A stretch of 64,000 bases of DNA. It comes from Octopus bimaculoides (lineage: Eukaryota). Shown piece after piece: positions 2,726 to 44,969 of this stretch. Where the stretch lies: NCBI RefSeq assembly GCF_001194135.2, contig NC_068991.1, positions 5,825,984 to 5,889,983 of the forward strand, read 5' to 3'. Both the position numbers and the translations under genes were made by a program. Within the stretch, counting starts at the first letter, position 1. Every line of letters begins with the position of its first letter. Under the pieces are notes generated by a model that made no database searches, had not been told where the DNA came from, and was given only the letters and a program-made list of their open reading frames with translations.

Positions 2726-2796
<71 letters not shown>

Positions 2797-3440: not shown

Positions 3441-3472
<32 letters not shown>

Positions 3473-8610: not shown

Positions 8611-8641
<31 letters not shown>

Positions 8642-8700: not shown

Positions 8701-8778
8701 GAAGAGAAAGGGAACAATGGCAGATATTTTGATGGTGTCTGAATTTTCAGTGACCATCCCCATCCCCACACCGTTTCC

Positions 8779-8819
<41 letters not shown>

Positions 8820-23077: not shown

Positions 23078-23171
23078 TTATTTTCCAGCTTGTTTTCTCA
23101 ACATATGATAGATACGCTCCTTTAACCAGCTTTGATTGTGAGGGATGTAGGTTTTTGTGCTTTTCTGAAAT
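23078..23171 (-). CDS. ERH: Enhancer of rudimentary homolog, last coding exon
   Basis: Acceptor ATATTTTGCAG| then 1 nt + FQKSTKTYIPHNQSWLKERIYHMLRKQAGK* (TAA at 23080-23078). Aligns by eye to the ERH C-terminus (human [28 protein letters not shown], from memory). Phase matches the preceding exon. Confidence 0.96.
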
Positions 23172-26028
23172 CTGCAAAATATTTTTAAAAAGGGGGAGAA
23201 AATAACAATGACAAAATATAAAAGCAAAAAGAATTTGGATGAGAGATAATAAATTTTATACCATCATATTAACATTTCTGTAATCGACTAGCCCCTAATT
23301 TCAAGGCCTTCGGTAGAAAGGACTATTATTGTTGTTATCTTTGTGGTTCTTCAACATGTTTCTTGAAAATACATCGGAAAGGAATATTTAATATGTTGTT
23401 CTTCGGGTGTCGCAGCTAGACAGATTAGGGATAACCAAATTAAGAATCCACACACTAACCATATAACACGACGCAAATTGAAGAGTTGCCTTCCTTGGAA
23501 AATAATGGTTAATAAAGTTACCTCCCTTAGATTTAACGGACGCACGTAATCGAAAAATTCTTCGTGGTCGTTCGATCAGCTAAAGATAATACCTTTTAAT
23601 CGCTATAAGTTTCGACCTCCAAAGGAGCCAGCCTTGTCACATTGTGTATCAATGCTGAATCTCCTCGAGAACAATGTTAAGGATATGTGTGTCTGCTCAT
23701 CACGTTTATTTGACGAGAAAACCGTTGTGAGTTATGACGAGTAAGCCGTTGTGACGAGTGAGTTATGTGTCCACACACACACACACACACCAAACCAACA
23801 CTGTTCGTCAGTGTAGGTACACACACACACAAAAACGATGGGCTTCTTTCAGTTTCTATCTACCAAATCCATCCACACGGCTTTAGTCGACCAGGAGCTA
23901 TAGTAGGAGGCAGTTGGCCAAGGTGCCATGCTGTGAGAATGAACCTATAACCATATGGTTGAAAAGCAAACTTCTTAACCACACAGCCATGCAGGCGCCT
24001 AAATTCGGGAGTTGTCTACCTTAGCATGTATATTCAAAGGAGTTGCTTCCCATTGAAGAAATAATTTCACACAGTGAGCGCTATCGTATAGAGCCAGGTC
24101 AGGCTCTAAACGAGAGGTTCTCAAACTTTTTGGGTCACCGCCCCTCATGGCTACATAATACCCTCAGCGCCCTCACCCCTATTTTTATGTATAAATAAAT
24201 ATTTTATATTTTATTAATTTATATATACTATGAATCATTTTATCATCATCATTTAACGTCCGCTTTCCATGCTAGCATGGGTTGGACGATTTGACTGAGG
24301 ACTGGCGAATCAGATGATTACACCAGGCTCCAATGTGATCTGGCAGAGTTTCTACAGCTGGATGCCCTTCCTAACGCCAACCACTCCAAGAGTGTAGTGG
24401 GTGCTTTTTAGGTGCCACCGGCACGAGGACCAGTCCAGCGGCACTGGCAACGACCTCNNNNNNNNNNNNNNNNNNNNNNNNNNNNNNNNNNNNNNNNNNN
24501 NNNNNNNNNNNNNNNNNNNNNNNNNNNNNNNNNNNNNNNNNNNNNNNNNNNNNNNNNNNNNNNNNNNNNNNNNNNNNNNNNNNNNNNNNNNNNNNNNNNN
24601 NNNNNNNNNNNNNNNNNNNNNNNNNNNNNNNNNNNNNNNNNNNNNNNNNNNNNNNNNNNNNNNNNNNNNNNNNNNNNNNNNNNNNNNNNNNNNNNNNNNN
24701 NNNNNNNNNNNNNNNNNNNNNNNNNNNNNNNNNNNNNNNNNNNNNNNNNNNNNNNNNNNNNNNNNNNNNNNNNNNNNNNNNNNNNNNNNNNNNNNNNNNN
24801 NNNNNNNNNNNNNNNNNNNNNTAAAGTCAGTCACTACATCAAAGTGGCTGCTCCATGCTACTACTAGTTTAACCCCAGGCAGACTTTCTGCCAGCTGGTC
24901 ATCGGTGCGACACTGCACCCGTTATATACAATATATGTTGTTAGCAGGAGGACTGAGCCCCTACCAACCTCGAGCAGGTAACAGGATCATGAAATTGACT
25001 CAGATTCAAGCTATTTGGCTCATCCTCAGTCACAAGCCTCTGTCTGCCAGAACGATAGCCAGCGTTTGTTTCAGCCAACAATATATTGTAAACAAAGTGA
25101 CCATCGGTCACTAATTTGCAACAAGCAAAGTAGTCTGACTGGCTATTGCAAGCAAATGTAAACATTGAGAAAAAAAAACGCATTTTGCCAAATTTGGACA
25201 TCCGACAGTTTAACATAACAACGATATAAGTGTGTGTGTGTCTGCGTGTGTGTGCGCGCGTGCGCGCGTGGGCACTTATTTTCTTCCTAATTCTTTTAAT
25301 TGTTCTATCGTATAATGGAGGAGTTCTCTCCCTTCCATTAAACTGGTTACTGTGTTGGTGCATAAAATCTTTGGAATATGGATTTATTACTTCTTAAGAC
25401 TCAACGAAATAAAACATTGACAAATTCAATCAGCTTCGACCTCCTCACAATTCAAACACGAGTCAAAAACACTGACAACTAATTTTCTTCCCAGTATTCT
25501 TATTTTCTAAGGCGGTGAGCTGGCAGAATCGTTAACAAACCGGGGGAAATGCCTAGCAGTATTTATAACTCATTTATAACCCCCATACGTTGCCTAGATA
25601 AACGTACACACAGACACATCCACGAATGCCTGTAAACATGCATGCATTCATCCATAAAGGAGCACTCCGTCGGTTACGACGACGAGGGTCCCAGCTGATC
25701 TGATCAACAGAACAGCTTGCTCATGAAATTAACATGCAAATGGCTGAGCACTCCACAGACACGTGTACCCTTAACGTAGTTCTCAGGGAGATTCAGCATG
25801 ACACAGAGTGTGACAAGGCCAGCCCTTTGAAATACAGGTACTACTCATTTTTGCCAGCTGAGTGGACTGGAGCAATGTGAAATAAAGTGTCTTGCTCAAG
25901 GACACAACACATCGCCGGGAATTGAACTCACGACTTTACAATTGCAAGCCAAATGCCCCTAACCACTAAGCCACACACCTTCACCATTCATATAGATGGA
26001 CAGACAGATTAGATAGAAGGCTACTTAC

Positions 26029-26149
26029 ACCAGGCAGTTGATGTCATTTAAGCGATCGATGAAGTCAAATAATTGGTTAATATCATAAATCACAGTGGGA
26101 GAGTTTGGGTTTTTCCGCTTCAAATGCTCCTCGTAAATTTTACAAACAC
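26029..26149 (-). CDS. ERH: Enhancer of rudimentary homolog, internal exon (121 nt)
   Basis: TTTTGAAAG| ... |GTAAGT; encodes (G)[39 protein letters not shown](V), the ERH core. Confidence 0.97.
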
Positions 26150-26304
26150 CTTTCAAAAGATTAAAGAGAAAAAAAAAAAGAAAGAAAAGAACATGGATTC
26201 AGTTTTGATTTGTATTTCTGAAACAAGACTAAATTGGAGAAATAATTTGTAAATGACAATATTCAAAAACAAAAAAAAAACAAAAAAAAAAATCATTAAC
26301 TAAC

Positions 26305-26392
26305 CTTCTAGACATTCACCAAGACTATCATAATCTGAATATGTTCGAGTATCTGGGCTCGACTGAACTTGTACAAGCAAGATGGTATGTGA
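26305..26392 (-). CDS. ERH: Enhancer of rudimentary homolog, exon of 88 nt
   Basis: Polypyrimidine tract + CCATAG| ... |GTTAGT; encodes [29 protein letters not shown](G), phase 0 start. SHTILLVQ is the ERH N-terminal signature. Confidence 0.97.
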
Positions 26393-26674
26393 CTATGGAG
26401 GGGAAAAGAGAGAAAGAAAGAGACACTATGGTTTCAATTATATTTGGATTATGTTGACAGTTGTATTGAACAGACAAAGGTCAGTGAAGCACCAAAATTT
26501 GTCTTTGTGCAAATATGGCTGGAATAAAGCTCGCTTTTTCTATTATGTATATTTTTGTTTTGTTTTCTGTAAGGGTGAAGCAATAGTGTCGTTGGTTACA
26601 GGTTCCCAACAGATCCATCACTGGTTCACTGCATTTCTGAAGAGGAGAGCGGCAAGGGAGTGTCTATAACTTGA

Positions 26675-26738
26675 TGCAGAACTAATATCTCAAGAGACTC
26701 AGTGCAGAACTAATATCTCAAGAGACTCAGTGCAGAAC
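26675..26738. repeat. 28-bp perfect tandem duplication
   Basis: TGCAGAACTAATATCTCAAGAGACTCAG x2.3. Confidence 0.9.
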
Positions 26739-27747
26739 AACAGACATCACAGAGGATTCGCTGGTTTTACGGGCTTTGACAACATTCATCGGCAAAACAT
26801 AAACTCAATCATACACACAACACATAAAGATTCTTTTATTTGTTTTAGTTATTTGTCTGCAGCCATGCTGGAGCACCACCTTTAGTCAAACAAATCCACC
26901 TCAGGACTTATTCTGTTGGTCTCTTTTGTCGAACCACTAAGTTACAGGGACATAAACACACTAACATCGGCTGTCAAGCGATGGTGGGGGNNNNNNNNNN
27001 NNNNNNNNNNNNNNNNNNNNNNNNNNNNNNNNNNNNNNNNNNNNNNNNNNNNNNATATATATATATATATATATATATACGACAGGCTTCTTTCAGTTTC
27101 CATCTACCAAATCCATTCACAAGGAAGGGCATCCAGCCGTAGAAAACTATGTCAAATCAGACTGGAGTCTAGTGCAGCCTTCCAGCATGCCAGCCCGGTC
27201 AAACCGTCCAGCCCATGCCAGCATAGACAACATCCGCTTTCCATGCTGGCATGGGTTGGACAGTTTGACTGAGGGCTGGCAAGCCAGGTGGCTGCACCAG
27301 ACTCCAATCTGATCTGGCAAGGTTTCTACAGCTGGATGCCCTTTGTAACACCAACCACTCCAAGAGTGTAGTGGGTACTTTTTATGTGCCACCAGCACAG
27401 GAGCCAGTCAGGCAGCACTGGCATCAGCCATGATCAAATGGTGCTTTTTACATGCCACCAGCTTGGATGCCAGTCCAGCGGCACTGGCACTGGCCACGCT
27501 TGAATAGTGTGTATATGTATGTATATATATAGTTAGAATTAACAAAAAAACAAAAGACGAAGACAGGTGTATGAACAACAAACAGGCTTATTAGTTTAAC
27601 ACTCGGGAAGGTGAGAAAGTCTTATGTTTCAAATCTACGCTCTTCAACAGAAAAGAATACAAGAAAATAAACAGAGAGAGAATAAAAAAAGCTTTAGTGG
27701 CTAGCGGTCAATCGTGGCGATATACATACATGTATATATATAATATA

Positions 27748-28093
27748 CAGGGCAATTTAAAAGTCTCCATACATAGGAAAATTTTATTTTTTATTAAGAA
27801 ACAACTTATAGATCCCCTGATCTGACCCCTCTTGATTTCTATCTTTTGGTCATTTGAAAGGCATGGGGTATCGCAAAAAGATAAAAAGACATAAATCATT
27901 TGAAGGAACATATCACCAGATGTGCTATTACGAGTTCACAATGAATGGGGTAAACGTATTGCAATGTGTATTCAAAACAATGGTAATCATATAGAGAGCC
28001 TGTTAAATATTTTTTTTTAAAAACTGTTTTTATAAACTGTTTCTTATAAAAAAAATAATTGTTCCTATGTATGGCAACTTTTGAATCACCCTG
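27748..28093 (+). mobile_element. Non-autonomous Tc1/mariner-superfamily element
   Basis: About 30-bp TIRs CAGGG..AT.TAAAAGT..CCATACATAGG flanked by TA; interior encodes SPDLTPLDFYLLGHLKG, a transposase C-terminus. Confidence 0.85.
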
Positions 28094-28873
28094 TATATTT
28101 GTCAATCTTTGGCCACTCTGATTTGATTAAATACAGACGTTTGGAGATGTACTTGTCTGGCAAGTGGCCTGATCTGGGACAGTTTGTTGAAAGTAAAGCA
28201 ATTTGAGCAGAGAATTCACACATAAACCATTCAAAAACACACAAAGACTGAACTTCACTTAAACATTTACTAACGAGTATCAAAATATTCATGGCACCAA
28301 CTGTGACCTGGTTGTAGTTCCAATGCGTCTCATTTCATAGAATAATAACAGGACATCACAAACGGACATCACATGAAATATGAAAACAAATAAGTTGAAT
28401 ATGCAAACGAGAAAAACAAATGGAAAACAGGACAAGTAACATAAAGAACGACCCTTCATCAGTTGTTGGCTGCCTATTTACTCTTTGCCCTGTTTATGAC
28501 ATCCTGTACCCATATATATATGTATGTGTGTGTATATATATATATATATAATTATATATATATATATGGAGAGATTCCATACAGTCTCCGTTTACCAAAT
28601 ACATTCACAAGGCGTTGGTGAGTCCAGAAATATAGTAGGAGTCACTTGCCGCCCATGGTGCTGCACAGCGGGTTTGAACCAGAAACCATGGGTTGCAATG
28701 CGAGCTGCTAAATCACACAGTTCTCCTCTCGAATGTGACACAAGTGATTAAGTGTGAATCAAGACAAAATCACTTTCATGCTGGCAGACGATGGCAATGT
28801 TTTCGCAAAGAAACATTTAAATTTTGAGAAAAGACCCCAACATAATTTTTTTTTTTTTTTTTGTTATAAATAT

Positions 28874-29124
28874 TAGACATGGTGGAAAAGTAATTTCCTA
28901 CCATGTCTTATGATAATGAGAAAATCATAAAAATGAAGAATTTCTATTAAAAAAACTTCATTTTTGTATTATGATTATTCATGTCCCAAATTTAACGTGA
29001 GGTAAACTGGGACAAAAATATACGTAATACAGAAATGAATATTTTTTTAAACAGAAATTCTTAATTTTCATGACTTTCTCATTATTATAAGACATGGTAG
29101 GAAATTAATTTTCCACCACGTCTA
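28874..29124. repeat. Fold-back element/MITE with long imperfect TIRs
   Basis: TAGACATGGTGGAAAAGTAATTTCCTACCATGTCTTAT... is reverse-complemented at 29050-29124. Confidence 0.85.
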
Positions 29125-30356
29125 TTTTTTTTTTTATTCAATTTTATGGGGTGGGGTAAAAAAAGGAAATATTTCCAGTCTTTGATAAACAATATGTTGA
29201 AACGTAAAGAAATAATAGAGATATTGTACATGTATTCACCTATTCATATTTTCTTCCTTTATCTCCATTTATTTTGTTAAATTTTGACCTGCTGGGTAAT
29301 AACGAAGAAGCTTCTACAAAGGTTTGTATTCATAAATGCGAGAAAATCATTACAAGACATTTATGCATATTTTCAAGAACTTCAAGGAAGTACAAAGTGA
29401 AAATGAACCTGGGGGGCACAGGTTCGTAAATTGACAAAATACCTGCAGTGTTGAGTTAGGTACTCTGTGTTTAGAGTTCAAATCTTATCGAGATCAGGTG
29501 TCTTTTTTGTTATTGGGAAATCGATGAGAATATAGTTTTATCGCAAAAAAACCACCCCAGGAAAATGTTTTCGATCAAGATGTAAGGGAAGATAACTCTT
29601 ATTACAGTAAATAATAGACATGACATCCGAGATGGAATTGGAAATTCTTACTCCTATTCTTTAACTCAACCTACACACACACACATTCACATTTTTACAC
29701 GAGGTAACGAGAAGGATTTCACAAGGTTACACGACATGCTAGGAATAGCAGCCTAATTTTCTTGGGGGAAAAAAATGAATAATATGCGAAGGGCGGACNN
29801 NNNNNNNNNNNNNNNNNNNNNNNNNNNNNNNNNNNNNNNNNNNNNNNNNNNNNNNNNNNNNNNNNNNNNNNNNNNNNNNNNNNNNNNNNNNNNNNNNNNN
29901 NNNNNNNNNNNNNNNNNNNNNNNNNNNNNNNNNNNNNNNNNNNNNNNNNNNNNNNNNNNNNNNNNNNNNNNNNNNNNNNNNNNNNNNNNNNNNNNNNNNN
30001 NNNNNNNNNNNNNNNNNNNNNNNNNNNNNNNNNNNNNNNNNNNNNNNNNNNNNNNNNNNNNNNNNNNNNNNNNNNNNNNNNNNNNNNNNNNNNNNNNNNN
30101 NNNNNNNNNNNNNNNNNNTCCTCTTCTATGAGGCACGGGACTTCGTTTGACGGGGAAACAGCTATTCCAAAACTCCGCCGCAAAAAAATTGGGGGCGTGG
30201 GTCATGGTTGGATCGCTTTTGACCGTAAGTTTGTTGGACGAGGACTGAGTCTGGGATAATCTAGAGCTAAAAAAACACACACACTTTAGAAATAACGAAA
30301 TAAAATACATTAAATTAAGAGAGTACTGTAGTTCGCTTGAAGCATTGTGTATTGTT

Positions 30357-30651
30357 TGTAAAGAATAAAAAGTTTAGAATGGTACAACAATGCACTATAA
30401 AACAAAAAATTGACTATATACCTGTTGTAATTTAGTTATCTATAGTCCGATGATATTTCGGAATTACAAGATCTTCTTAGATGGAGTCTCTGCTATAGTA
30501 CCGTTTATAACAGGAACTCCAAGAAGATCTGAAGGAATTGTAATTCCGAAATATCATCGGACTATAGATAACTAAATTTCAACAGGTATATAGTCCATTT
30601 TCTTGTTCTATAGTGCATTGTTGTACCATTCTAAACTTTTTATTCTTTACA
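30357..30651. repeat. 295-bp near-perfect palindrome
   Basis: Arms of about 115-135 bp (TGTAAAGAATAAAAAGTTTAGAATGG... / ...CCATTCTAAACTTTTTATTCTTTACA). Confidence 0.92.
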
Positions 30652-30850
30652 TTAAATTAAATTATAACGCTAATCACGGAAGCATCCGAAAGGAAACGAC
30701 GCTTTCGCGTAGCCATGTGTGCGTATTTATATATTTCTGTTTACATAAAGGTCATGCAAGAAACACCGACTGACGATTTTTAATTCAATAAACAAAAGCC
30801 AAACTACATATATATACACATGTGTAAAAACATAAAATGTGTAAGCTTAC

Positions 30851-30913
30851 ATTGGTTTTTAAATTTGGATTAAGATAATGATATTTGTCGCTGATGCGAG
30901 GATGTCCAGCCAT
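30851..30913 (-). CDS. Candidate first coding exon of ERH (MAGHPRISDKYHYLNPNLKTN)
   Basis: AAGATGG start context, in-frame TGA 10 codons upstream, phase-0 donor |GTAAGC at 30850 compatible with the phase-0 start of exon 26392. Pyrimidine-rich acceptor (TCTCCATGTTGACAG|) at 30980 and a CpG-rich setting. No transcript evidence. Confidence 0.45.
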
Positions 30914-31695
30914 CTTCCACCGGGATGGGTGGTTGTCGGCTCACCTGCTAATTCTTTGAATTATCACACTATGTTCCTACTGTCAACATGGAGATAAAAT
31001 GGAAATAGAATTTGATATGATTGAGATAGATCGTGTGCTGCTGCTTGCTAGGAGCTAGGAGCGATAAGAACAACCATCCATCAAGTCGATGTTTAAGAAC
31101 GACATAAATAAACAGTGACGGAAAAACAACGGGAAAAACAGAAACGTGGAAATCTCGTTGATTCGAGAGAGAAAGACAAAAATAAACATTATTTTTTAAA
31201 TGTGTAAAATTTCGATGCGAAATATTTTTGTTTTAGATTGGATTTTTGTTATGTATTTCTTTCTTCTTTTATTTATTTCTAAATTAGATTAATATTTATA
31301 GTTTTTTTTTTCTCTGCGTAGCGAGATTTTATATTTCCGTCCTATCGAAGAAGTTCCGATGTTATCAGACCTGATAGAAATAGCAGTCTAATCTCCCTCA
31401 AATCCAGGAGTGCCAATTTATTTTCGACTAGGACTACCTATTTTCAGAATAGTCTAGTTCCTAAACTAGTACTTCTTACAGATAGCTTGGAATTTAACGT
31501 TATTTTCAAGATATAGTAGCGGGTTTTAGTGGAGGTTTTTTTTTTAATATGATAATTTTATATTTGAAAATACAAATGCAATTATAATAAAATGTGAAGA
31601 AATATTTCGATGATAGTCTAGGTTTGCACACACGTCACAGTTTCGCTCCTAGAGTATTTCGCTTTTCACCAAAGCGACTCCGCATTTTTGCTTAC

Positions 31696-31790
31696 CTTGT
31701 CAACCTGTAGTACCGTGTACGTGGCTTCTCATAGCAGCCAAAACTCTCTCGGTAAATAGTAGACATGCAATCAAGTAACCAACTCATGCC
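31696..31790 (-). other. Candidate non-coding 5' exon of ERH
   Basis: Strong minus-strand donor CAAG|GTAAGC at 31695 in CpG-retaining sequence; the 5' boundary is a guess. Confidence 0.3.
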
Positions 31791-32840
31791 TTGGTTGGGG
31801 AGGGAAAGATTCTTTCGTTTTAAGTACATGTATCTGCGTGAAATAAAAATAATCGGATGGGGAGAGATACAAAATTGAACTTGGATATTCTGATTAAGCG
31901 GAACGAATACGTAAATGCTTATGTGTCACTTATTGGTAGTTAATTTAATATTTTCTCAAGTTAGATATTTTCTAGTTCATTTTTATAACTTCCTTGGAAT
32001 ATTTTGTCATTATTATTATTGTTTCGGGGTTGTTTTATTGGTAATCCTTCCGATTAACGATTGTTTTATTACAGAACCGATTTGTAACGTGTTTATATAA
32101 GTGTAGCAGTGTGACTATTATTTTGCGTAGTTCTTTCGAAGTTATTTTAATAGCTTCGTCATTAAAGTTAAAATGAAAGTGTTTCCATTTAAAAAGTTAA
32201 ATCTTTTAATAAATACAAATAAAAAATTAAATACTGACGGGTTATTAAACAGATTACTTAGTAAGTGACTTCAAAGTATTTACATATTCGTTTTGGTTAA
32301 TCGGGATATCCAGATCTATTTTTGTGTTTTCCCGAACTGTTTTGGTATTCCGCAGACACACGCAGACACATGCATTTTTTGAGTACTTTTTGGTTATCTC
32401 ACTCCCTTTAAAAAATTACCTTTAAAAATTTGGGCTATCTCCCCACTGAGTTGATTTTATGTGGTGACAAAAGTTTGAATTAAAAGAGATACTTTTGATT
32501 CAATACTTCAGCACATTGTTGTCTTTTGCCCCCCACCCCACCCCAATAGGAATGATATGATTTGTTATAAAAATGTTATTAGATTCGATAAGATGTTTAA
32601 TTTTTCAGTTTTCATGTTTATTGTTTTTTTTCAGTTTTGCATGATTTGTTATAAAAATATTCTTTTCTACTCTAGGCACAAGGCCCGAAATTTGGGGGGA
32701 GGAGGCATGTCGATTAGATCGACCTCAGTATGCAACTGGTACTTTATCAACCCCGAAAGGATGAAAGGTAAAGTTGACTTCGGCGGAATTTGAACCCAGA
32801 ACGTAGTGACAGGCGAAATACTGCTTAGCATTTCGCAAAT

Positions 32841-34330
32841 TTTTTTTTTTTTTTTTCCCCACAAGGGGACAACAAAGAGGGGACAGTACAATCTGATATG
32901 GGGTCAGATTTCACGTATGAATTAACAAAAAGATGAATTAAAAAATTTTACATAAATATGAATAGTTCGAATGATGACATATACAAGACAACATTACAGA
33001 ATGATGTGGGGAGGCGGGATATGCTCGGACCCCACGAGCCCCGTCTCACCACTGATGCTTTGGGTTCGTCCTGCGTTGTATTCATGCGGTTCCACCCATA
33101 CGCAACATTCGTGCGACATTCTTCCATCGATGTTGGAACATTTTCTCTAACCCTATTTTCCTCCTTAGGTGGAAGGTGAAGAAATTCACCAAGCCAGGGC
33201 CAGATATAAAAATGCCTGTTATTAACCCTTTCGGCCCGAATGTACGTTGGAACAGACTGGCTGGCTGGCTATCATCGAGACCCAGGGCCTCCCCCAAGGT
33301 AACATCACATTTCGCCTCTACCAACCCTCTATAGAAGAATGTGGTAGAACCACTACCGCAGGCGTTGCCCGAGAGATGGAATATCCGGAGAACCTTACGA
33401 CACTCCGTAAACTTCGATCTACGATAGAACCAGGTATCCAGTCTACCGAACTAGTGAACTTGGGAAACATCTGTTTCGCCAGCGGAGACCACACCCGATC
33501 ACCATCAAGATGGAGCCACAAATGCCTCAACCTCAGCGCATCATCAGCCAAGGCATCCCTAGCCCACCCTTTAACGGTTGTTGGCAGCAAATAGATCGTC
33601 TCACAAGCAGATTCGAGCCCTTCCACAAGAAGCAGAAGAGCTGTCTTTCCAGCTTGCTCGACCACGAATCAGGGCAGAGAAGGACGGTTAGGCGGTAGGT
33701 GATGACCGATGCGATGAACACATTGGCCACCTCCGCTCACCCTTTCAGGGATAGCCACCACCAAGATCAGGTCTTGGCTATGTGGGCTACCCTGCTCGCT
33801 ACCTCAGCCCAGTTCTTCTCTATTTGGAGGCCTGGTCCAAACCAGACTCCTAGCAACTTAATCGGGCCCTCCGTCCAACGTCCCACGACGCTGTCAGGTG
33901 GCATTGACTTGCCTCTCCAGGTGCCGAGCTGTAAGCCGACTGACCTTTCACGATTAACCTTTGCTCCTGCCACCGTCTCGTATTCCTCAATGGCCTTGCC
34001 TACCCTCTGTAGGTGATCCATTTCGGTTACGATGATGGTGATGCCGTCCGCGTACGCTGAAACCGACTCTCCACAACTTGGTTGTCTCGGGATATCGCTC
34101 AATTTTCGCCGCAATGGCTCAAGAGCGATTACATATAAAAGCGGGTTTCCGTAGCAACAATGACATCCAAATTGCGCCAAGTGATGTCATTAAGGAAGCG
34201 ACCTTGCTTCCAGCTTGACCCCAGGCCACGCACATTCAAACAACCATCTATCTACAAGCTATCTACTTACCTTGGCATCGGTGGCTTTCGGCCTTGTCCT
34301 TTTCCTTTACCCGGGCTCGTGAGGTGGTTT
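32841..34330 (-). mobile_element. Tx1/L1-clade non-LTR retrotransposon, internally deleted, with poly(A) tail
   Basis: Endonuclease N-terminus GCLNVRGL...LDVIVATETR (about 34250-34142), RT motifs PLLYVIALEPL, AYADG, KLLGVWF and KGGLGMP; ORF2 end at 33082; T16 run at 32841-32856. Confidence 0.9.
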
Positions 34331-34980
34331 GACATAGGTCCTCGTACATGGACTTACTGAAGTCCAACCTCGGTGGGGCTTATGATTTTAATATTGCCAG
34401 GTTCATATCGTCTATTTGTATTATAAAAATTCCTTCTGGAATGTTCTTTGAAGATTTCTGCTGTAGGAATATTTTTAATTCTAGCTGTCAATTGTTCCTT
34501 CGTGGCATTTATTGCCACTAATAGTAACNNNNNNNNNNNNNNNNNNNNNNNNNNNNNNNNNNNNNNNNNNNNNNNNNNNNNNNNNNNNNNNNNNNNNNNN
34601 NNNNNNNNNNNNNNNNNNNNNNNNNNNNNNNNNNNNNNNNNNNNNNNNNNNNNNNNNNNNNNNNNNNNNNNNNNNNNNNNNNNNNNNNNNNNNNNNNNNN
34701 NNNNNNNNNNNNNNNNNNNNNNNNNNNNNNNNNNNNNNNNNNNNNNNNNNNNNNNNNNNNNNNNNNNNNNNNNNNNNNNNNNNTATATACACACACGACG
34801 GGCTTCTTTCCGTTTCCGTCTACCAAATCCACTCACAAAGGCTTTGGTCGGCCCGAAGCTATAGGTGGGACTGAACCCGGAGCCATGTGATTGGGAAGCA
34901 AGACTCTTACCACACAGCCAAGCCTGCGCCATATGCAAAAATAATTCAAATCGTGTTAATTCCTAGCTGAAAACTCAGCT

Positions 34981-35015
<35 letters not shown>

Positions 35016-38000
35016 TCGACTTTGCCTTTCATCCTTTCGGAGTCGATAAATTAAGTACCAGTTGCGTACTAGGGTCGATCTAATCGAGTGGCCCCCTCCC
35101 CCAAAACTTCGGGCCTTGTGCCTAGAGTAGAAAAGACATCTTGGGCAACATCTTCTGCTTTACCTCCGAGTCAGCCGATGCCTTGAGAGTGGATTGATTT
35201 GGTAGATGGAAACTGTGTGAAACCCGTTGTATTTATATTTGCGTGTGTGTCTGTGTTTGCACGCAAGCACACACACACACGTGCGCGCACACAGAGTGCT
35301 GAACAACTTGTGTCTGTTTGTTTACATCTCTATAAACTAGCGGTTCGACAAAAATGACTGATAGAATACGTACATGGGACAAAAATTAAGTAGCGAGGTC
35401 GATGTGTTCGACGAGAGCCTTTCAAGGCGGTGCTCTAGCATGGCCGTACTCCAACGACTGAAGCAAGTAAAAGAAAAACGACAAAAGATATTTTTTTCTT
35501 CTTCTTCTTCTTCCTATTTCGTTTCCCATAAAGTACGAGAGATAATTCCGGTCATATTTAAATTTTATTTTGACGCCATGAGTCTACTTTAATTTTGCCG
35601 AAACTGTTATGGATGGAGGTTCGGAATTATTTAAGCTCTAAATAAACGGTTGTATTTACATTTCCGCAAAAATATATGATAAACTCGAGTTAAGTATATG
35701 TCAACATTGTTTAGAGCCATAAACGGGGTGAAAAAGAATATAATAAATAAAACAATTAGTTGATAAGGCGAATATTATTATTATTATTTTTTTCAATATA
35801 TTTTGTTCTCGGCATCTACAAAATATTCCTTTCTCTGTGCGCAAGACTTTATAGTTTTAGGAAAGCTTTTTGAGGAAAAACATATTCTAGAAATACTTAT
35901 TTATGTATTTATTTAATGTTGATATTATTTGACAGCTTAAGCAGAAGATATTTTAACAACCAGATATGAATTTTTTAAAATCGTTTTGCTATAAAATTAA
36001 AGCTAACTATAATACATATATTTTAATGTTTGAAATATAATTATATTGTTATTTAAAACATTACACTGAAATTTTAACATTAGAAGGAAAGCAATTCCAA
36101 AACAGAAAAACCTGAATTTATTTTTTTATTTATTTAAAAAATATTTTTTTTATTTTTTGCAAACGTTTACAACAGCAAAATATAACGTTGGAACATAATA
36201 TTAAAACGTGAAAACCGTTCCATACAAACATAGAATTAAAAAGAAAACATTCACGTTCGTTTAAAAACCTGACAAGTTTGCAAATTTCTCTTTATATCTC
36301 ATGGTTTATAATTTCAAGCATGAAATAAAATTATATAAATCTATTCGTTCAATGTATAAACAAAAATTTCGAGTTTTCTTATGACAAAAGAGTTTTCTTT
36401 ATCTATTTTTTTTTCAACAGCTTTTTTTCTTGTTTACAATCAAATATAAAACAAGCAATATGAGAAAAAATACAAATATTTAAAACAGTTAAATTGATTT
36501 TTTTAAATGTTTACTGCAAACCATGTGAATTACATTTTCATGGCACACACGCATTCTCACACACAAATACGTATGTATATGAATATATGAATGCCTGTGT
36601 ATGTATGTGGGGTGTACACATACACACGCACGTGTTGATTTTTAGAGAATGGAAGAAGTAGTATTCTGTTCTCTGTATAGATATAATAGCATATATATCA
36701 ATCTGTAGCGAACAACTACAGAATTCCTTACCTAAGATTTGAAAGCGAATCCATGTTTTCCACATTGTTCTCGGCCTATTGTTTTAACCTTTCAGCACCG
36801 AGGTTAATAAGAATGAATTGGTCTCTTGGTCCTTTTTCAAGACATTCATCAGTCAAACCTGATATAGTGAAAAATCCGAATGTTTTCTGTTAACCTAATT
36901 AAATTACGAAGACTATAAATATGCAAGCAAATATCAGTTGATCTCCTTTGGTAATTCGGCATCTGCCAATAAGCTTGGCTATCTTCTCGTCTCAGGTATG
37001 CCCTATCTTGACCCTGAAAACACATCAATACTCAATCTGTCTGCATACTTTACTTTTACTGTCTTTATCCCAAACTGTCACAGAGAAGAACTTACTCGGG
37101 ATTTCTACAAGTTGTGTACACACAAACAACTCGACAAAGTTGTATATTTCTTATGCATTGTAACGACTGATATTATAATCAACTTAATAAACGGCCACTT
37201 GATAATTATTTAATATTGTTCCTCATTCATTTCTCCTGATGCATCTTCACACTAACATTACGTCGTTATACACACACACATGTAAACACCATTATATATG
37301 TGTGTGTGTGTGTGTGTGATGCACGAGCACATGCGCACTTGAAAAGTTAACGATATCACCCACCTGATAGCAAACAGGATTCGTGGGGATCGGTTAGTGT
37401 GTGCATATGTGCTGCAAAACCGGAATGAAGTCCAGGCAGGGATTAACTTTTTAATTACATGAGATATATATTCAATTCTTTTTATTATATACTTTCTACA
37501 TGAAATAACTTCGAATACAAATTTTTTTATCTGTTCTATAAAACAAAATATACAAATATACGAAGTTTGAAAGTGTTTCGGTATCAAAAACACTACATAA
37601 AACATAAATGAAAAATGTTGCCCGTCAAACCAAAAAGATCCAAGAAAGTTTAAAGACGTTTGAGACATATTCGAAAGCCATTCACTGCATTTTGTCACAG
37701 AAAAAAAAATTTTTCGCGGTAAACACACCAGGTCAGTTCGGAGCGCCCGCATGCATTTCGGAGCAGTTATCTCCTCTTCGGCAATGAACGCTGGGAAGAG
37801 AGGCAACTCTGAACTGACTACAAGAGACCAGGTCTCTCTCATTAGATTCCAGTCAAAATACTGTCACCGGTTCCGCTAATCGGTGGGCCACCGTAGTGGA
37901 ATATGGATTAGAATCGCTAAACACTGATTTACACAAATATAAACTTGTTACTAATTCAGAGACGGTTCTTTTATTTCTTTCACTTGTTTCAGTCATTTAA

Positions 38001-38261
38001 CTGAGGCCATGCTGGAGCACTGCCTTTTAGTCAAAGAAATCGACCCCAGGGCTTATTCTTTGTAAACCTGGTACTTATTCTATCGGTTTCTTCTGCCGAA
38101 CCGTTAAGTTACAGGGACGTAAACACATCAACATCGGTTGTCAAGCGATGGTGAGGGAGGGACAAACACAGACACAAAGACATGCACATAAGAAGTGGCT
38201 GTGTGGTAAGTAGCTTGCTTACCAACCACATGGTTACGGGTTCAGTCCCACTGCGTGTCAC

Positions 38262-38850
38262 AGATCGCATGCAACACAACAAAGTCTGGTTGATGAAGGT
38301 GTTATCGTATTGAAAGATTGGTCAGTTCGTAGCACTGACTTAAATATCATCGAACAAATGTGGACAGAGCTAAAGAGAAGAATTCTTCAGAAGAATCCCT
38401 GCAATCTTGAAGAGTTGTGGGAACTCAGCCTCAGAGAATGGCATCTCATGGTGAAGGATTTGTACGCATCTCTTCCCCGGCACATTGAAGCAATTATTCA
38501 AGCTAAGGGAAGCCACACAAAATATTAACAATGTACAGTAACTTCTTGAAATGAACATTATGTAATAAATTTTCATTATAGACATTTTCCTGTTTTAAAA
38601 CACTACATCATGATTCGTTTTATGTGAGGTGGCCAAAAACCTTTGCACAGCCATTTTTAGTGGTCGTCTCGCATCTGCCCCTCTCATTCAGAACCCCTAC
38701 GACAAAATATAATGATTAAGTATGGAAATGACTCCAACAGGGCCAACGTTTCATCTGTAAAAAACGCAATGCGAAACATCTACTTTTCAGTTGGCTATTA
38801 ATAGAAATTTACAATAGTTTAAAGTGGCCAAAGACCTTTGCACAGTGCTG
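38262..38850 (+). mobile_element. Tc1-like transposon 3' end with IR/DR-type terminus
   Basis: WSVRSTDLNIIEQMWTELKR...LPRHIEAIIQAKGSHTKY*; 22-bp direct repeats GTGGCCAAARACCTTTGCACAG at 38629 and 38824, ending CTG followed by TA. Confidence 0.88.
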
Positions 38851-39391
38851 TATGTGTATGTGTGTATACACATGCATATGTTTACATGTACATGGGTATG
38901 TGTGCGCACGCGCGTTATTGGATGTGTTTAATGAAGTGTACACTCACTCTATTTATTGTATTGAGTACTTAGTTAAATGTAGTTTATACCAACCTCTTGG
39001 CTTGTAGCACCCTATCTGTTTATATTTCTGTCTACCTGTCTGTCTGTTTGTCTATACGTGTATGTGACTTTCTATATCAATTTATATATTGGGAAGATAG
39101 ATAAGATTTTGATATGTATCAAATAACATTGAACTGTGTGAATATCTCTGAAAACAAAGTTAGAGAACAACACCTGCTTTGTGTTCTTCTTTGTCTTTCA
39201 GCTCTTTGTGGAACACGGGCCATTGATATACACCTCCCAAGTCCTACTGGTATGTTGAATCCTTTCTTTTCCTATCAGTTCTTTGATTGCCTTGTTCATC
39301 TGGAAGGAGTTCGACGAGAGAATGTCTTATTCAGTGGCGGCTCGTGTATAGGAACAGCAGAACTGCAGCACCCCCTATTTCCACTCGATAT

Positions 39392-39504
39392 TATCGATAA
39401 CAGGCTGGTCCTACACTCCCGCTCACGTGATCCTGCCTCCCATCGCTCCTTGTCTTCTGGTAAGGACCGTCAGCTGTTGACGTTACCGACCCTATACTTC
39501 CGGT
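39392..39504. promoter_or_regulatory. Housekeeping-type promoter motif cluster between ERH and ZIP9
   Basis: TATCGATA (DRE-like) 39392-39399, TCACGTGA E-box 39423-39430, ACTTCCGGT ETS motif 39496-39504, plus-strand donor CTG|GTAAGG at 39460, high CpG density. Confidence 0.4.
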
Positions 39505-40045
39505 TCACCTCATCCCCTTAATATCATAACAAGTAATACCACTCAGTACAGCAGTAACCAAACCACTAAACTTGAAGCAGATTTGATGGCGATAACCTAT
39601 GTGGAGCTTTTTAAGTCAACAGTAGCTGTTGTACTTCAAACTGTATACACAAGACAAACTATAAACGTTATCATTCATTTATTTATTGAATTGTAACTCA
39701 AAACCTGGTCTTGTCAGAAAGCTTGTAACAAAGTGTATTACTTATGCTGAACCCGTGATAAGATTACGTATTTTATAAATCATGATAAATATAACACTGT
39801 AAGTGTAGACGGTTATCACTTTTGGACTCTTATAGTGAAATGATTATATCCTGTAGAAAGTATGTTATTACGAATAGCATATTTCAATTTTATTTTCTTT
39901 CGAATCAACTGTGAAGTTGTTTATTTTGGTCGCGAGAGTTGCTATACAGGATGTAACTCTCGTATTTCTGGATCTTCTCAACATTCGTGATTGGTCACAA
40001 GAGCGGTGCACCCATTACTATGACTTTGCTGTTTAATATATATAT

Positions 40046-40470
40046 ATAGATCGCTGACCACAACATTCAAATGTTTTTCTCCGTGTTTTTCTCCTTATTC
40101 TTTCTGTTGAAGAGCGTAGCTCGAAACGTTAAAGACTTTCTCTATTCCCGAGCGTTAAACTAATACATCCTTTTGTTGTTTACACCACCTGTCCTCGTCT
40201 GTTGTTGTTTTTTTCGTAAATTCTCCCATTGTTTACACCACCTGTCCTCGTCTGTTGTTTTCTTCGTAAATTCTCCCATATATATATATGGGAGAATTTA
40301 CGAAAAAAACAACAGATGAAGACAGGTGGGGTAAACAACAAAAGGATGTATTAGTTTAACGCTCGGGAATAGAGAAAGTCTTTGACGTTTCGAGCCTATG
40401 CTCTTCAACTGAATGGAACACAGAAAGAAACAAAGAGAAAAAAATATAAATGTAGTGGTCAGCGATCTAT
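40046..40470. mobile_element. Inverted pair of Penelope-like terminal repeats centred on (AT)n
   Basis: Arms 40046-40277 and 40290-40470, each with TGTTGAAGAGC.TAG.CTCGAAACGT; decayed copy at 27540-27710(-). Confidence 0.7.
40099..40135 (+). ncRNA. Minimal type-I hammerhead-ribozyme-like motif (A6U core variant)
   Basis: TCTTT-CTGTTGA-A-GAGC(GTA)GCTC-GAAA-CGT-T-AAAGA: stem I, core, stem II, GAAA and palindromic ACGT stem III. Confidence 0.45.
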
Positions 40471-41189
40471 CATGGTGAATGCTGGACAGAAGGAACATGT
40501 ATAAACATATAATTTAAATATAGGATAAAATCTTTATAAGATTTTATCAAGTAGTTAGCGTGAAAAACCTTCAAAGGGAAAAATTTATATATGTATAAAT
40601 AACTATATTATATTATTAATATCAATATAAATATATATNNNNNNNNNNNNNNNNNNNNNNNNNNNNNNNNNNNNNNNNNNNNNNNNNNNNNNNNNNNNNN
40701 NNNNNNNNNNNNNNNNNNNNNNNNNNNNNNNNNNNNNNNNNNNNNNNNNNNNNNNNNNNNNNNNNNNNNNNNNNNNNNNNNNNNNNNNNNNNNNNNNNNN
40801 NNNNNNNNNNNNNNNNNNNNNNNNNNNNNNNNNNNNNNNNNNNNNNNNNNNNNNNNNNNNNNNNNNNNNNNNNNNNNNNNNNNNNNNNNNNNNNNNNNNN
40901 NNNNNNNNNNNNNNNNNNNNNNNNNNNNNNNNNNNNNNNNNNNNNNNNNNNNNNNNNNNNNNNNNNNNNNNNNNNNNNNNNNNNNNNNNNNNNNNNNNNN
41001 NNNNNNNNNNNNNNNNNNNNNNNNNNNNNNNNNNNNNNNNNNNNNNNNNNNNNNNNNNNNNNNNNNNNNNNNNNNNNNNNNNNNNNNNNTCGGGGTGTCA
41101 GTTGAGAGACGTGCTTTCCAGTAAGTAAATTAACATCTCAGGGCTGCACTACGTAGTATGTAATTACTATAATTCGTACATTTGAAACA

Positions 41190-41495
41190 GTGAAAGCACG
41201 TGGCTTAGCGTTCGGGGAAATTCGAAAGGTCGTGAGTTCAGTTCCCGGCGACGCGTTGTGTCCTTGAGCAAGACACTTCATTTCATGTTGCTCCAGTTCA
41301 CTCAGCTGGCAAAAATGAGTAGTACCTTTTTTTTTTCAAAGGGCCAGCCCTATCCTATTCTGTGTCACACTGAATCACCCTGAGGACTACGTTAAGGGCA
41401 TGTGTGTCTGTGGAGTACTCTGCCACTTGCATGTTAATTTCACGCGCAGGCTGTTCCGTTGATCGGATCAACTGGAACATTCGTAACCGACGGAT
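41190..41495 (+). mobile_element. SINE with GCGTGGCTTAG head, CORE-like TTGAGCAAGACACTT block and GTAACCGACGGA tail
   Basis: Related copies at 12040-12300, 17645-17820, 25645-25982(-), 46592-46863(-), 47895-48118 and 60170-60335(-). Confidence 0.8.
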
Positions 41496-41555
41496 TGTCA
41501 GTTACATTTGAAACAGTCCAATGCATAAAAATAAATAACATGACGTAACAGAATA

Positions 41556-41940
41556 TGTAGCGAGCATGTTTCCAGTTTGGCTTTTTACCGTTAAGTACCC
41601 ACGTTTTGGCTCATCACATGATGGTCAAGTCTCTCTAGCTTTACGCGGGTTGTCCACCCAACCACATGATAGACCAGCCAAGCGCATTACCCTAAACCAG
41701 CCGAGCACGTTACCCTCAGCTATATAAGGAATCTTTTCCTGCTATTTTCTCAGTCAGGCGGGTTTTGCACGATCGAGTTTGGATCTTCGGCAGAGAGCAA
41801 TTGTTTTACAGGCATCCTCAGCTATTCCTTTGACGCGTACATTTGTTCTTGTCCTCGAGCAGAAGTTATGTCTCGTATTTGTTTCTCCTGTTCTCTCCAG
41901 CACACATCATCATCATGTACCAACTGCATGTTAAACCTTT
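41556..41940 (+). mobile_element. Possible solo LTR
   Basis: Starts TGTAG, contains TATATAAG at 41721 followed by a pyrimidine tract and CTCAGT; boundaries and TSD not demonstrated. Confidence 0.35.
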
Positions 41941-42437
41941 GTGTCTATATTTGGTAGACGGAAACTGAAAGAAGCTTGTCGTATGTGTGTGTGTGTGTGT
42001 GTGTGCGCGTGCGCGGGTGTGTGTGTGTATGTCTGTGTTTGTCCCCCACCATCGGTTGATAATTGATGACGGTGTGTTTACGTTCCTGTAACCTTGTGGT
42101 TCGGCAAAAGAGATCGATAAAATAAGCGTTAGACTTCAAAGAATAAGTCCAGGGGTTGATTTCTTCGACTAAAACTTTTTAAGGCGGTACTCCAGCGTGA
42201 CTGCAGTCAAATGAGTGAAACAAGCAAAAGAATAAAAGAAAACACACACACATATATATACATACATATATATACGGCAGGCTTCTTTCAGTTTCCGTCT
42301 ACCAAATCCACTCACAAGGCTTTGGTTGGCCCGAGGTTATAGTAGAAAACACTTGCCTAAGGTGCCATGCTGTGGGATTGAACCCGGAGCCATGTTGTTA
42401 GTAAGCAAGGTACTTACCACACAGCCACTCCTGCGCC

Positions 42438-42501
<64 letters not shown>

Positions 42502-42808
42502 GATTCGTCTAACATAGGAAAGAATTTCAGAAGTACATGTGTAATAAAAGATTTTCGGTATGTAATAGCAATCCAAGAGTCTAGAAAGTTGCGACCCAAA
42601 TTAGGTCATGGCATAATTCTGAATGGGTCGCAAAGTCAGAAATATTTACTTTTGCGTTATTCTATACAATGTAAATGTTCTTTAATATCTTGTACATAGA
42701 TTTAGGCTAAGAGACACACCACGATATTTGCAGAAAGCTAAAACTGGGAGAATATCAAATGTTATCTTTTATTCAGTTTAAACAAAAGAAAAAAAAATTG
42801 TTTTCTAT

Positions 42809-43480
42809 AGGTGCAGGTATGACTGCGTGGTTAAGAAGCTTGTTTCGCAACCATGTGGTTTTGGGTTCAGTCCCACTGCGTGGCACCTAGACCAAGTGTT
42901 TTCTACTTGAAGCCCCGGGCCGTCTCACGACTTGTGAGTGAATTTGGTTGACGGAAACGGTGAAGCCCGTCTATACATACATACATACATACATACATAC
43001 ATACATGTATGCATGCATACATACACACACATACATACACACATACATACATAAATGCATGCATGCATACACACATACATACATACATACATACATACGT
43101 ACGTACGTACGTACGTACGTACGTACAGACATGCATACATACATGCTACATAAATACATACATACATACATGCATACATATATGCATACATGCGTACAGA
43201 CAAGCATACATGCATACACACACACATACATACATACATACATACATACATACATACATACATACATACATGTCTGTGTGTTTGGCCTGAACCGTGTGCT
43301 TAGCAATCGGTTTGTTTACGTCCTCGTAACTTAGCGGTTTGGCACAAGAAGCCGATAGAATAAAAAAAAACAAGCTTTAATATAATAAAAGTACTGAAGA
43401 TGGATCGATCTATTCGACTAAAAACATTTTCAAAGCGGTGCTCCAGCATGACCGCAATCCAATGGGTGAAACAAGTGAAA
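42809..43480 (+). mobile_element. SINE family A copy with expanded internal (ACAT)n/(ACGT)n array
   Basis: Intact head at 42809 and tail at 43300-43480 separated by about 300 bp of tetranucleotide repeats. Confidence 0.88.
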
Positions 43481-43559
43481 AAATATCGGAGAGAACGTAT
43501 CTATTTCGGCGCCTCTAATGCCAATAATAACAACAACAACAATATAGTACCAACCAACA

Positions 43560-43670
43560 AACAGTAAATGCGGCCAGCCTGGCGGTTAATCGTCAACAGG
43601 TTAACTAGACACATCATCCCCGCCTAAGCTGACAGCAAGCGTTCGGTAATCATCGGCAAAGTCCGGAGTG
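43560..43670 (+). other. Candidate non-coding 5' exon of ZIP9
   Basis: CpG-rich unique sequence ending in donor GAGTG|GTGAGT at 43671, about 1.2 kb upstream of the ZIP9 ATG; start uncertain. Confidence 0.35.
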
Positions 43671-44300
43671 GTGAGTGCTCGTTGTCGTGTGGTTTATCTC
43701 CCTTAGATTAGATTCTCGTTATGGCTGGCTGGCCTGAAACATCCCTAAGTACCAGCCGCCTCTTGTCTACTGGAAAGGCAACAACACCATAAACAAAACA
43801 TTATACACCAAACAGGAGGCCTTAGACACAGGCGAAAACATATTCCTACCATCCACACAAACATCAAGGTATCCAATCATTCTATTATTGTTAAAATATA
43901 ACTAGAGCAATGCTCTGACTACCCAAACGGCAACAATAATAACAAGAAGTGGACGTATATAAGTTAATAACGTCAACAAAATCCATACAGTATATAATAT
44001 ATTTGTATTATATATAATAATAGTTAAGCTTGGCATTAGCGTTGAAGGATCTGTGCTATTTTAGATTGTAATTCCTGGTGTTAACTATTAGATTAATAGA
44101 CACACGCACATATATATATATATATATGTTGATGAGAAATGCAATTAAGTTAAGGTGCTTCCTGGAAACAGCATCTCGAACCTATTTTCTACCACTTCCT
44201 CTTCGTCTTTAATACTGTATACACACACAGTTTTCTGCTCAATTGTAAGTTTATTTTGTTTATTTAATAACTTGTCTTTTTGTATGTTTTTTTAGCTACT

Positions 44301-44336
<36 letters not shown>

Positions 44337-44696
44337 GCACACGGACAGATAGATAAATTCTGTAGTCATTACATACACATGTACTTCAATTTATATCATC
44401 GTTACACATTGTCAAACATACATAAACACATAACAATTGTATAGAGTAGCTGCTCTTATTTACGTANNNNNNNNNNNNNNNNNNNNNNNNNNNNNNNNNN
44501 NNNNNNNNNNNNNNNNNNNNNNNNNNNNNNNNNNNNNNNNNNNNNNNNNNNNNNNNNNNNNNNNNNNNNNNNNNNNNNNNNNNNNNNNNNNNNNNNNNNN
44601 NNNNNNNNNNNNNNNNNNNNNNNNNNNNNNNNNNNNNNNNNNNNNNNNNNNNNNNNNNNNNNNNNNNNNNNNNNNNNNNNNNNNNNNNNNNNNNNN

Positions 44697-44741
<45 letters not shown>

Positions 44742-44873
44742 TACGCCAAGTTCTTGACTGGTGTGGTCGTGTCAGCGTATATATATATATATGTTTAGGA
44801 CAGCATATATAACTGACAACTTGCTTTTGGCTAACTTCTAAAGAAGAAGGCAAAACAGCTGGACATTACCGAC

Positions 44874-44969
44874 ATGGATAATACCTGGACTTTACTCATT
44901 CTTTCTTTGGCCATGCTACTAGGATGTTATATATCTGGCGTTATACCGTTGGCATTCCATTTCACAGAG
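44874..44969 (+). CDS. SLC39A9: Zinc transporter ZIP9, first coding exon (96 nt)
   Basis: GACATGG start; encodes MDNTWTLLILSLAMLLGCYISGVIPLAFHFTE then phase-0 donor |GTAAGT. Matches the ZIP9 N-terminus (human [32 protein letters not shown], from memory). No exon-2-like sequence found up to 64000. Confidence 0.95.

Follow-up and report, generated by a model that had tools for sequence, protein, structure and literature searches.

An ancient bilaterian head-to-head gene pair, ERH and ZIP9 (SLC39A9), is retained in octopods with a divergent ERH copy

We analyzed a stretch of 64,000 nucleotides of Octopus bimaculoides DNA (the window), which corresponds to positions 5,825,984-5,889,983 of chromosome CM046611.1 in assembly GCA_001194135.2, in the same orientation as the record. 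The window contains a gene of the ERH family, here called ERH-A, that lies head to head with the first coding exon of ZIP9, also known as SLC39A9. The same two genes are head-to-head neighbors in chordates, molluscs, a brachiopod and an annelid. The pair is therefore at least as old as the bilaterian ancestor, with losses in some lineages. We consider it probable that the octopod locus is a modified version of this ancient pair, in which ERH-A stayed in place, a second ERH copy (ERH-B) moved away, the spacer was inflated, the two genes came under separate promoters and the pair was retained because its ancestral interval was a small target.

ERH orthologs were used as anchors for a survey of the pair, and the called genes within 10 kb were read for each species. 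Wherever the pair occurs, its orientation is 5′ to 5′ (Table 1). The Zip-domain proteins encoded next to ERH have 312-339 amino acids in oysters, amphioxus, Lingula, Owenia, Pomacea and mouse, and they are ZIP9 orthologs along their length, with 48-85% identity per exon to human ZIP9 in tblastn comparisons. A previous reading of the window, made from the sequence only, had proposed an ancient bilaterian microsynteny retained in an octopus. This proposal is borne out by mouse, amphioxus, oysters, the gastropod Pomacea, the brachiopod Lingula, the annelid Owenia and the octopod Argonauta hians. The expectation that outgroups share these neighbors did not hold for the ant Harpegnathos, where the pair is absent and the neighbor of ERH is a PRKCSH-like gene, or for the sea anemone Exaiptasia, where no ZIP9 was found within 10 kb of ERH. 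The pair has the properties of a conserved ancient microsyntenic pair, in that the same unrelated genes are neighbors in distant lineages and the 5′-5′ orientation is kept.

In vertebrates, the adjacency of ERH and SLC39A9 is visible in any genome browser, and the human pair is at 14q24.1. For the human adjacency, the support gathered here comes from mouse and from a chicken interval of 1 Mb that contains ERH, SLC39A9 and GALNT16. In amphioxus (positions 1-2871 of the fetched locus) and in Lingula (1-4064 of the fetched locus), the next gene past ZIP9 encodes a GALNT-type glycosyltransferase, and in oyster and Lingula CRIPT follows ERH on its downstream side. More than two genes may thus belong to the conserved block, although CRIPT does not occur in the octopus window. 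We also observed that the ERH gene of Exaiptasia (10733-10939 of the fetched locus) retains its first two introns and lacks the third, such that exons 3 and 4 are fused. This structure agrees with the intron-loss pattern described in a review of ERH (PMC10605862).

The exons of ERH-A were located by tblastn with a vertebrate ERH query that is 100% identical to the mouse and other vertebrate entries. The gene is on the minus strand and has four coding exons, whose spliced translation is exactly that of XP_014781498.1 (100%). It matches the Pfam family ER (PF01133) over its full length (E=9e-44), with residues 2-99 aligned to profile positions 1-98 of 98. The tblastn matches, the reading of the exons and the Pfam result confirm an ERH gene on the minus strand with exons of 88 and 121 nt, as had been proposed. 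Exon 2 opens directly at Ser2, so the start codon must be upstream. The first coding exon is kept in O. vulgaris, O. sinensis and Argonauta; an alternative first coding exon of a predicted isoform (Table 1) is not covered by any block aligned to O. vulgaris or O. sinensis.

The exon plan of ERH, with exons of 3, 88 and 121 coding nucleotides, is identical in all bilaterians tested (mouse, oyster, Pomacea, Lingula, Owenia and amphioxus). ERH-A keeps the 88- and 121-nt exons and has a modified exon 1. The sizes given in the sequence-only reading for the human genes (88 and 121 nt in ERH, 96 nt in ZIP9) hold, as checked in mouse rather than in human. ERH proteins have 100-110 amino acids throughout evolution and are typically encoded by one copy per genome (PMC10605862). 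With its 120-121 amino acids and a second ERH gene in the same genomes, ERH-A departs from this norm, yet it still belongs to the ERH family.

The 96-nt exon that faces ERH-A is 91% identical to the start of an annotated 325-amino-acid Zip-domain (PF02535) gene in Argonauta. It is 50-63% identical to ZIP9 exon 1 of mouse, oyster, Pomacea, Lingula, Owenia and amphioxus, and in all of these species the first coding exon of ZIP9 is also 96 nt long and followed by GT. The match to human ZIP9 has an E-value of 0.002. The Argonauta gene and the exon-1 orthology in six species bear out the assignment of this plus-strand exon as the first coding exon of ZIP9. By itself, the exon of 32 amino acids is too short to yield a Pfam match. 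In a HMMER search it gave 18 matches at E≤1e-3, one of which is the N-terminus of a 322-amino-acid Zip-domain protein (65% identity). Among the seven matches listed, five of which were scanned with Pfam, one is a full-length ZIP9 and six are short open reading frames (ORFs) that read into the intron. These read-through ORFs diverge immediately after “SE”, which is where the splice donor sits.

No other recognizable gene lies between ERH-A and ZIP9, as had been claimed. The GenBank record of O. bimaculoides has no called gene within 10 kb on either side of ERH (to 40.9 kb), no gene is called between ERH-A and ZIP9 in Argonauta, and the spacer has no Rfam family and no tRNA. Nine of ten scanned ORFs have no Pfam match, and the tenth is only a fragment of a reverse transcriptase. 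The earlier reading had put 14-18 kb of DNA rich in transposable elements between the coding starts; the measured distance is 13,960 bp (Table 1). The repeat share of the spacer is a lower bound, being the fraction of read bases that recur in a small sample of octopus DNA.

Separate CpG-undepleted patches occur at the 5′ ends of ERH-A and ZIP9, and the DNA between them is CpG-depleted. The patch at ERH-A would fit a promoter-like, unmethylated region and is a candidate ERH-A promoter. Upstream of ZIP9 is the sole non-coding stretch of the spacer that aligns between Octopus and Argonauta (Table 1). We also considered a non-coding ZIP9 exon ending at a donor-like GTGAGT (43671), and dropped it because the GTGAGT is not conserved in Argonauta. 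Bidirectional promoters have less than about 1 kb between 5′ ends. Judged from start codons rather than transcription start sites, the spacing in the window and in Argonauta exceeds this distance, while the 325-1114 bp of the other species are within or close to it.

Table 1 Features of the ERH-A and ZIP9 locus in the window, and distances between the ERH and ZIP9 start codons in each species
Feature	Position or distance	Strand or orientation	Details
ERH-A first coding exon, MAGHPRISDKYHYLNPNLKTN (21 aa)	30851..30913	-	100% tblastn match to the N-terminus of XP_014781498.1; ends ACC AAT, then GTAAGC
Alternative first coding exon MNILIL (doubtful)	28275..28292	-	Predicted RefSeq isoform X2; exact match to N-terminus, GT donor
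ERH-A exon 2, 88 nt	26305..26392	-	AG before, GT after; same 88-nt exon in outgroups
ERH-A exon 3, 121 nt	26029..26149	-	From sequence reading; same size in outgroups
ERH-A last coding exon	23078..23171	-	TAA stop at 23080-23078; from tblastn and sequence reading
Intergenic spacer, ATG to ATG	30914..44873		13,960 bp, including 936 N in three gaps; at least 20% of read bases interspersed repeat; microsatellites
CpG-undepleted patch at and upstream of ERH-A exon 1 (candidate ERH-A promoter)	30000..32250		CpG observed/expected 1.0-1.6 (window mean 0.71)
Degraded reverse-transcriptase ORF (retroelement remnant)	33770..34180	-	G+C-rich patch (0.51-0.55); Pfam RVT_1 E=1.8e-5, below gathering score
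Single-copy conserved non-coding element (candidate ZIP9 or shared regulatory element)	43642..43801		Colinear with Argonauta, 71% identity; about 1.1 kb upstream of ZIP9 ATG
ZIP9/SLC39A9 first coding exon, MDNTWTLLILSLAMLLGCYISGVIPLAFHFTE, 96 nt	44874..44969	+	Starts with ATG; GTAAGT donor, phase 0
ERH/ZIP9 start-codon distance, mouse	1114 bp	head to head	chr12, GRCm39, 80.67-80.70 Mb
ERH/ZIP9 start-codon distance, amphioxus	419-461 bp	head to head	Three assemblies
ERH/ZIP9 start-codon distance, oyster	566-638 bp	head to head	Three assemblies
ERH/ZIP9 start-codon distance, Pomacea	515 bp	head to head	
ERH/ZIP9 start-codon distance, Lingula	345 bp	head to head	
ERH/ZIP9 start-codon distance, Owenia	325 bp	head to head	
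ERH-A/ZIP9 start-codon distance, Argonauta	4854 bp	head to head	
ERH-A/ZIP9 start-codon distance, O. bimaculoides	13,960 bp	head to head	

A homology search revealed a second cluster of octopod ERH proteins, ERH-B, which have 102 amino acids and are about 70% identical to the gene in the window. Octopus and Argonauta hians have both paralogs. Within Octopus, the ERH-A gene was recovered in O. bimaculoides, O. vulgaris and O. sinensis, and there are ERH-B entries for all three. The two genes share a chromosome or contig, with 17 Mb between them in O. bimaculoides and 3.4 Mb in Argonauta. ERH-B (CM046611.1, 23.08-23.11 Mb) is itself head to head with another gene, MED6, with 464 bp between the start codons (432 bp in Argonauta), and it is followed by PIGH. 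The DNA upstream of ERH-A has no similarity to the spacer between ERH-B and MED6.

The 88- and 121-nt exons found in both paralogs show that the ancestral introns were retained; the duplication was thus a DNA-level event, and neither copy is a retrocopy. As to its age, the squid Euprymna has a block of ABHD18, presenilin, WD40, MED6, ERH and PIGH genes, for which Octopus is the only other sharer (PMC9023564, Supplementary Dataset 1, block 14147). The presence of the MED6-ERH-PIGH block in Euprymna and Octopus means that the position next to MED6 predates the split of squid and octopus. Since the position next to ZIP9 is common to the outgroups, both ERH sites would have been occupied in the coleoid ancestor and the duplication would be at least that old. 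By parsimony, then, the duplication would precede the octopus-squid split. A neighbor-joining tree of ERH proteins places ERH-A on a long, isolated branch, and about 100 amino acids are too few to date the duplication. The genes MED6, PIGH, PSEN1, ERH and SLC39A9 are all located at human 14q24, and for this reason the cephalopod MED6-ERH-PIGH block seems to have arisen by reshuffling inside a single ancestral linkage group and not by transfer between chromosomes.

ERH-A is the more divergent of the two paralogs. It has 63-74% identity to outgroup ERH proteins, versus 68-82% for ERH-B, and it has changed five of the 48 positions that are invariant in outgroups, versus two for ERH-B. Its dN/dS ratio is 0.03 between O. 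bimaculoides and Argonauta and 0.013 between O. bimaculoides and O. vulgaris. The exon encoding the N-terminal extension is also constrained (dN/dS about 0.075). The ERH-B proteins of Octopus and Argonauta are identical (dN=0). To judge by these substitution patterns, ERH-A evolves faster, yet is clearly functional and under strong purifying selection. We also noted that dS between O. bimaculoides and Argonauta is 1.8 (saturated) for ERH-A, about three times the 0.63 of ERH-B. This gap could stem from constraint on the codon usage of a highly expressed ERH-B, or from mutation rates that differ between regions.

The extension of ERH-A might be explained by the end of its first exon. In every other ERH gene examined, including ERH-B, exon 1 ends with ATG directly before the GT of the donor (ATG|GT). 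In octopod ERH-A, exon 1 ends with ACC AAT, followed by GTAAGC, such that the G of the would-be ATG is the first base of the donor. The simplest reading of this junction would be a shift of the start codon. A change of one base at the exon 1 junction would have removed the old start from the mRNA, and an in-frame ATG located 60-63 nt upstream would have come into use, converting former 5′ UTR into an extension of 20-21 amino acids. On this reading, exon 1 of ERH-A, together with its promoter, would still be at the ancestral place.

The proposed history of the locus can now be given in full. In the ancestor, the start codons of ERH and ZIP9 would have been roughly 0.3-1 kb apart, with a shared bidirectional promoter region; given the spacing in seven other lineages, such a bidirectional promoter almost certainly existed. 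ERH would then have been duplicated as DNA, with its introns, before the octopus-squid split. ERH-B would have acquired MED6 as a new, compact head-to-head partner, beside PIGH, while ERH-A would have remained beside ZIP9 and evolved faster under strong purifying selection. Repeats would have inflated the spacer to 4.9 kb in Argonauta and to about 14 kb in Octopus. These start-to-start distances, compared with 0.3-1.1 kb elsewhere, argue against a shared core promoter today, and ERH-A and ZIP9 most likely use separate promoters, as their separate CpG patches suggest. The pair most likely survived because the interval between the genes was originally a very small target, in which any break would have done damage. 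A tiny historical target could explain the retention without selection.

Several points weigh against this account. Of ZIP9, the window contains exon 1 only: tblastn detected no other exon of the gene up to position 64,000, and the rest would be beyond the window. A word-index search with the ZIP9 exon plus its read-through into the intron found no annotated protein; this is probably a limit of the tool with short queries, since the Argonauta protein, which shares many 5-residue words with the query, was also missed. The argument for a shifted start codon turns on an exon end of AT, which chance would produce about once in 16 cases, and we infer both the origin of the ERH-A extension in former 5′ UTR and the separate promoters from the DNA sequence. 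The date of the duplication depends on parsimony and one supplementary table, and the cephalopod genomes compared are those of octopods. The conserved element at 43642-43801, which is single-copy and kept in Argonauta, leaves room for a continuing regulatory link. Finally, two gaps in the spacer (40639-41089 and 44467-44696) are unbridged, as the O. vulgaris and O. sinensis DNA that was compared ends before them.

The question of why the pair persisted allows different answers. The retention might be purely passive, meaning that no breakpoint happened to hit a small interval and the pair has no present function as a pair. We judge this to be almost as probable as not. The ancestral interval of about 0.3-1 kb is a very small target, and even 14 kb is modest for a genome of the size of the octopus genome. 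Hundreds of ancient blocks survive in cephalopods (PMC9023564), and the pair is dispensable, as the ant has lost it and none was seen in the anemone. However, six lineages at the level of phyla have kept one orientation and a sub-kilobase spacing for more than 500 million years, which exceeds what is expected from normal drift (PMC3514665), and the conserved element in the octopod spacer also speaks against pure passivity.

Another answer is an active cis-regulatory constraint, in which ERH-A and ZIP9 are held together by shared enhancers or a common regulatory domain, and breaks are selected against. The order and orientation of the genes were kept through heavy reshuffling of the genome and since the separation of Argonauta and Octopus, and the spacer has a single-copy non-coding element in common between them. 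Moreover, ancient head-to-head pairs are generally enriched for co-expression (PMC3514665), and ancient blocks in cephalopods are co-expressed above the level of simulated microsyntenic blocks (PMC9023564). Nonetheless, the spacer has 10-40 times the length seen in other animals and contains repeats and a retroelement remnant, and the CpG-undepleted patches are separate, with depleted DNA between them. Also, the conservative ERH copy is the one that left the pair, so control of ERH dosage or housekeeping expression need not depend on this locus. We regard active constraint as rather unlikely. The sequence-only reading had taken retention to imply such a constraint, which is not demonstrated, given that a small target suffices. 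It had also regarded retention as surprising in view of the reshuffling of coleoid genomes. This argument is weakened by the 275 ancient metazoan microsyntenic blocks retained in Euprymna, versus 216 in scallop (PMC9023564). Because cephalopods retain about as many ancient blocks as scallop, the survival of one pair is not surprising.

A further proposal divides the labor between the paralogs. The housekeeping role would have gone to ERH-B, with its compact promoter region shared with MED6, and ERH-A would be a specialized, extended factor that is tied to ZIP9 by a shared element. We consider this improbable as it stands.

Two other alternatives concern the adjacency itself. The sequence-only reading had allowed that this ERH might be a lineage-specific paralog that moved beside ZIP9 independently, such that the likeness to human is coincidental. 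It is indeed one of two paralogs, and the more divergent one, but its site is the ancestral one. That an independent move should restore both adjacency and head-to-head orientation with the ancestral partner, among many thousands of genes, would be extremely unlikely. ERH-A also has introns at all of the ancestral positions, and its exon 1 occupies the place expected for the ancestral ATG|GT exon. In addition, MED6 and PIGH are not neighbors of ERH in oysters, amphioxus, Lingula, Owenia, mouse or Pomacea. An independent move can hardly be entertained.

The adjacency could also be a scaffolding artefact of a gap-rich assembly. The window has 19 runs of N, and six of these, including the two unbridged ones, are within range of the pair; none touches a coding exon. 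In O. vulgaris, 296 bp with clean flanks take the place of the gap at 29799-30118 (320 N). Three others (24458-24821, 26991-27054 and 34529-34783) have repeat flanks and are bracketed by same-orientation colinear blocks of O. vulgaris and O. sinensis, both of which are colinear with the window over 20.3-39.4 kb. The independent assembly of Argonauta hians has the same order, from the ERH-A exons through the conserved element to ZIP9 exon 1, which independently backs the gene order in O. bimaculoides and makes an artefact extremely improbable.

We note some additional observations in the window. An intronless ORF of 89 codons, MEKQVVKVKVMHVPPEIEIL...VQNGG, occurs at 22011-22280 on the minus strand, about 800 nt downstream of the ERH-A stop codon and on the same strand. 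It is flanked by AATAAA sequences, two in front of it (22506 and 22454) and one behind it (21926). O. vulgaris and O. sinensis encode exactly the same protein (100% identity), and the nucleotide differences number 14-15 synonymous and zero non-synonymous. In Argonauta, the only species with a gene called here, the protein identity is 74% (dN/dS 0.07). No sequence match was found in Pfam, NCBIfam or PDB. A single-sequence AlphaFold model (pLDDT 74) predicts a small alpha/beta fold with no significant match in PDB. A resemblance to the “GxGxLHxEI” motif of LepA/EF-G domain III is non-significant (E=1.7) and is a lead only. The longest gap-free ORF of the window (294 amino acids, 8053-8937, minus strand) is not a gene but low-complexity sequence, with poly-F, poly-L, poly-P and His/Arg runs that lie on simple repeats.

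Conserved ancient head-to-head pairs are already well described. Irimia et al. published about 600 conserved ancient microsyntenic pairs (CAMPs) in 2012, with a co-regulated 5′-5′ class that includes HSPE1-HSPD1 (PMC3514665). ERH-ZIP9 is a further example, now shown to survive in octopods. Like CAMPs, it consists of unrelated divergent neighbors whose orientation is kept across deuterostomes and lophotrochozoans, and in most species they are less than 1 kb apart. Unlike CAMPs, the octopod version has a spacer of 5-14 kb, and its ERH is a divergent copy that arose by duplication. The mouse Erh-Slc39a9 locus has the same genes, orientation and exon plan (3/88/121 nt in ERH and a 96-nt first coding exon in ZIP9), but its start codons are 1.1 kb apart, compared to about 14 kb here, and ERH is single-copy in mouse and human (PMC10605862). 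Literature searches on ERH, SLC39A9 and microsynteny or bidirectional arrangement found nothing specific.

The cephalopod MED6-ERH-PIGH block (Schmidbaur et al. 2022, PMC9023564) also has a compact head-to-head ERH, on the same octopus chromosome as the window. It differs in that its ERH is ERH-B, at a derived site 17 Mb away, and in that it is a new cephalopod arrangement rather than an ancestral one. ERH is normally single-copy and its duplication is rare; the ERH review names only C. elegans and Physcomitrella as having two ERH genes, and it does not mention SLC39A9 (PMC10605862). The octopod ERH paralogs and the ERH-A protein of 120-121 amino acids are therefore a small addition to the known diversity of ERH. 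C. elegans ERH-1 and ERH-2 resemble the octopod case as a lineage-specific duplication with one strongly diverged copy (PMC10605862), and ERH-2 is a subunit of the PETISCO/PICS piRNA complex. This duplication is independent of the octopod one, and any specialization of ERH-A would be speculation by analogy.

If ERH-A were a specialized factor, it would provide an invertebrate parallel to C. elegans ERH-2, and the octopods would offer a natural experiment on the splitting of a bidirectional pair between two paralogs. Of greater use is the asymmetry of the paralogs: the copy at the ancestral site diverged and apparently took up a new start codon, while the relocated copy is conservative and has a new, compact partner. 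The locus is thus a clean test case for whether a gene pair is retained because of a present regulatory need or because of its history.

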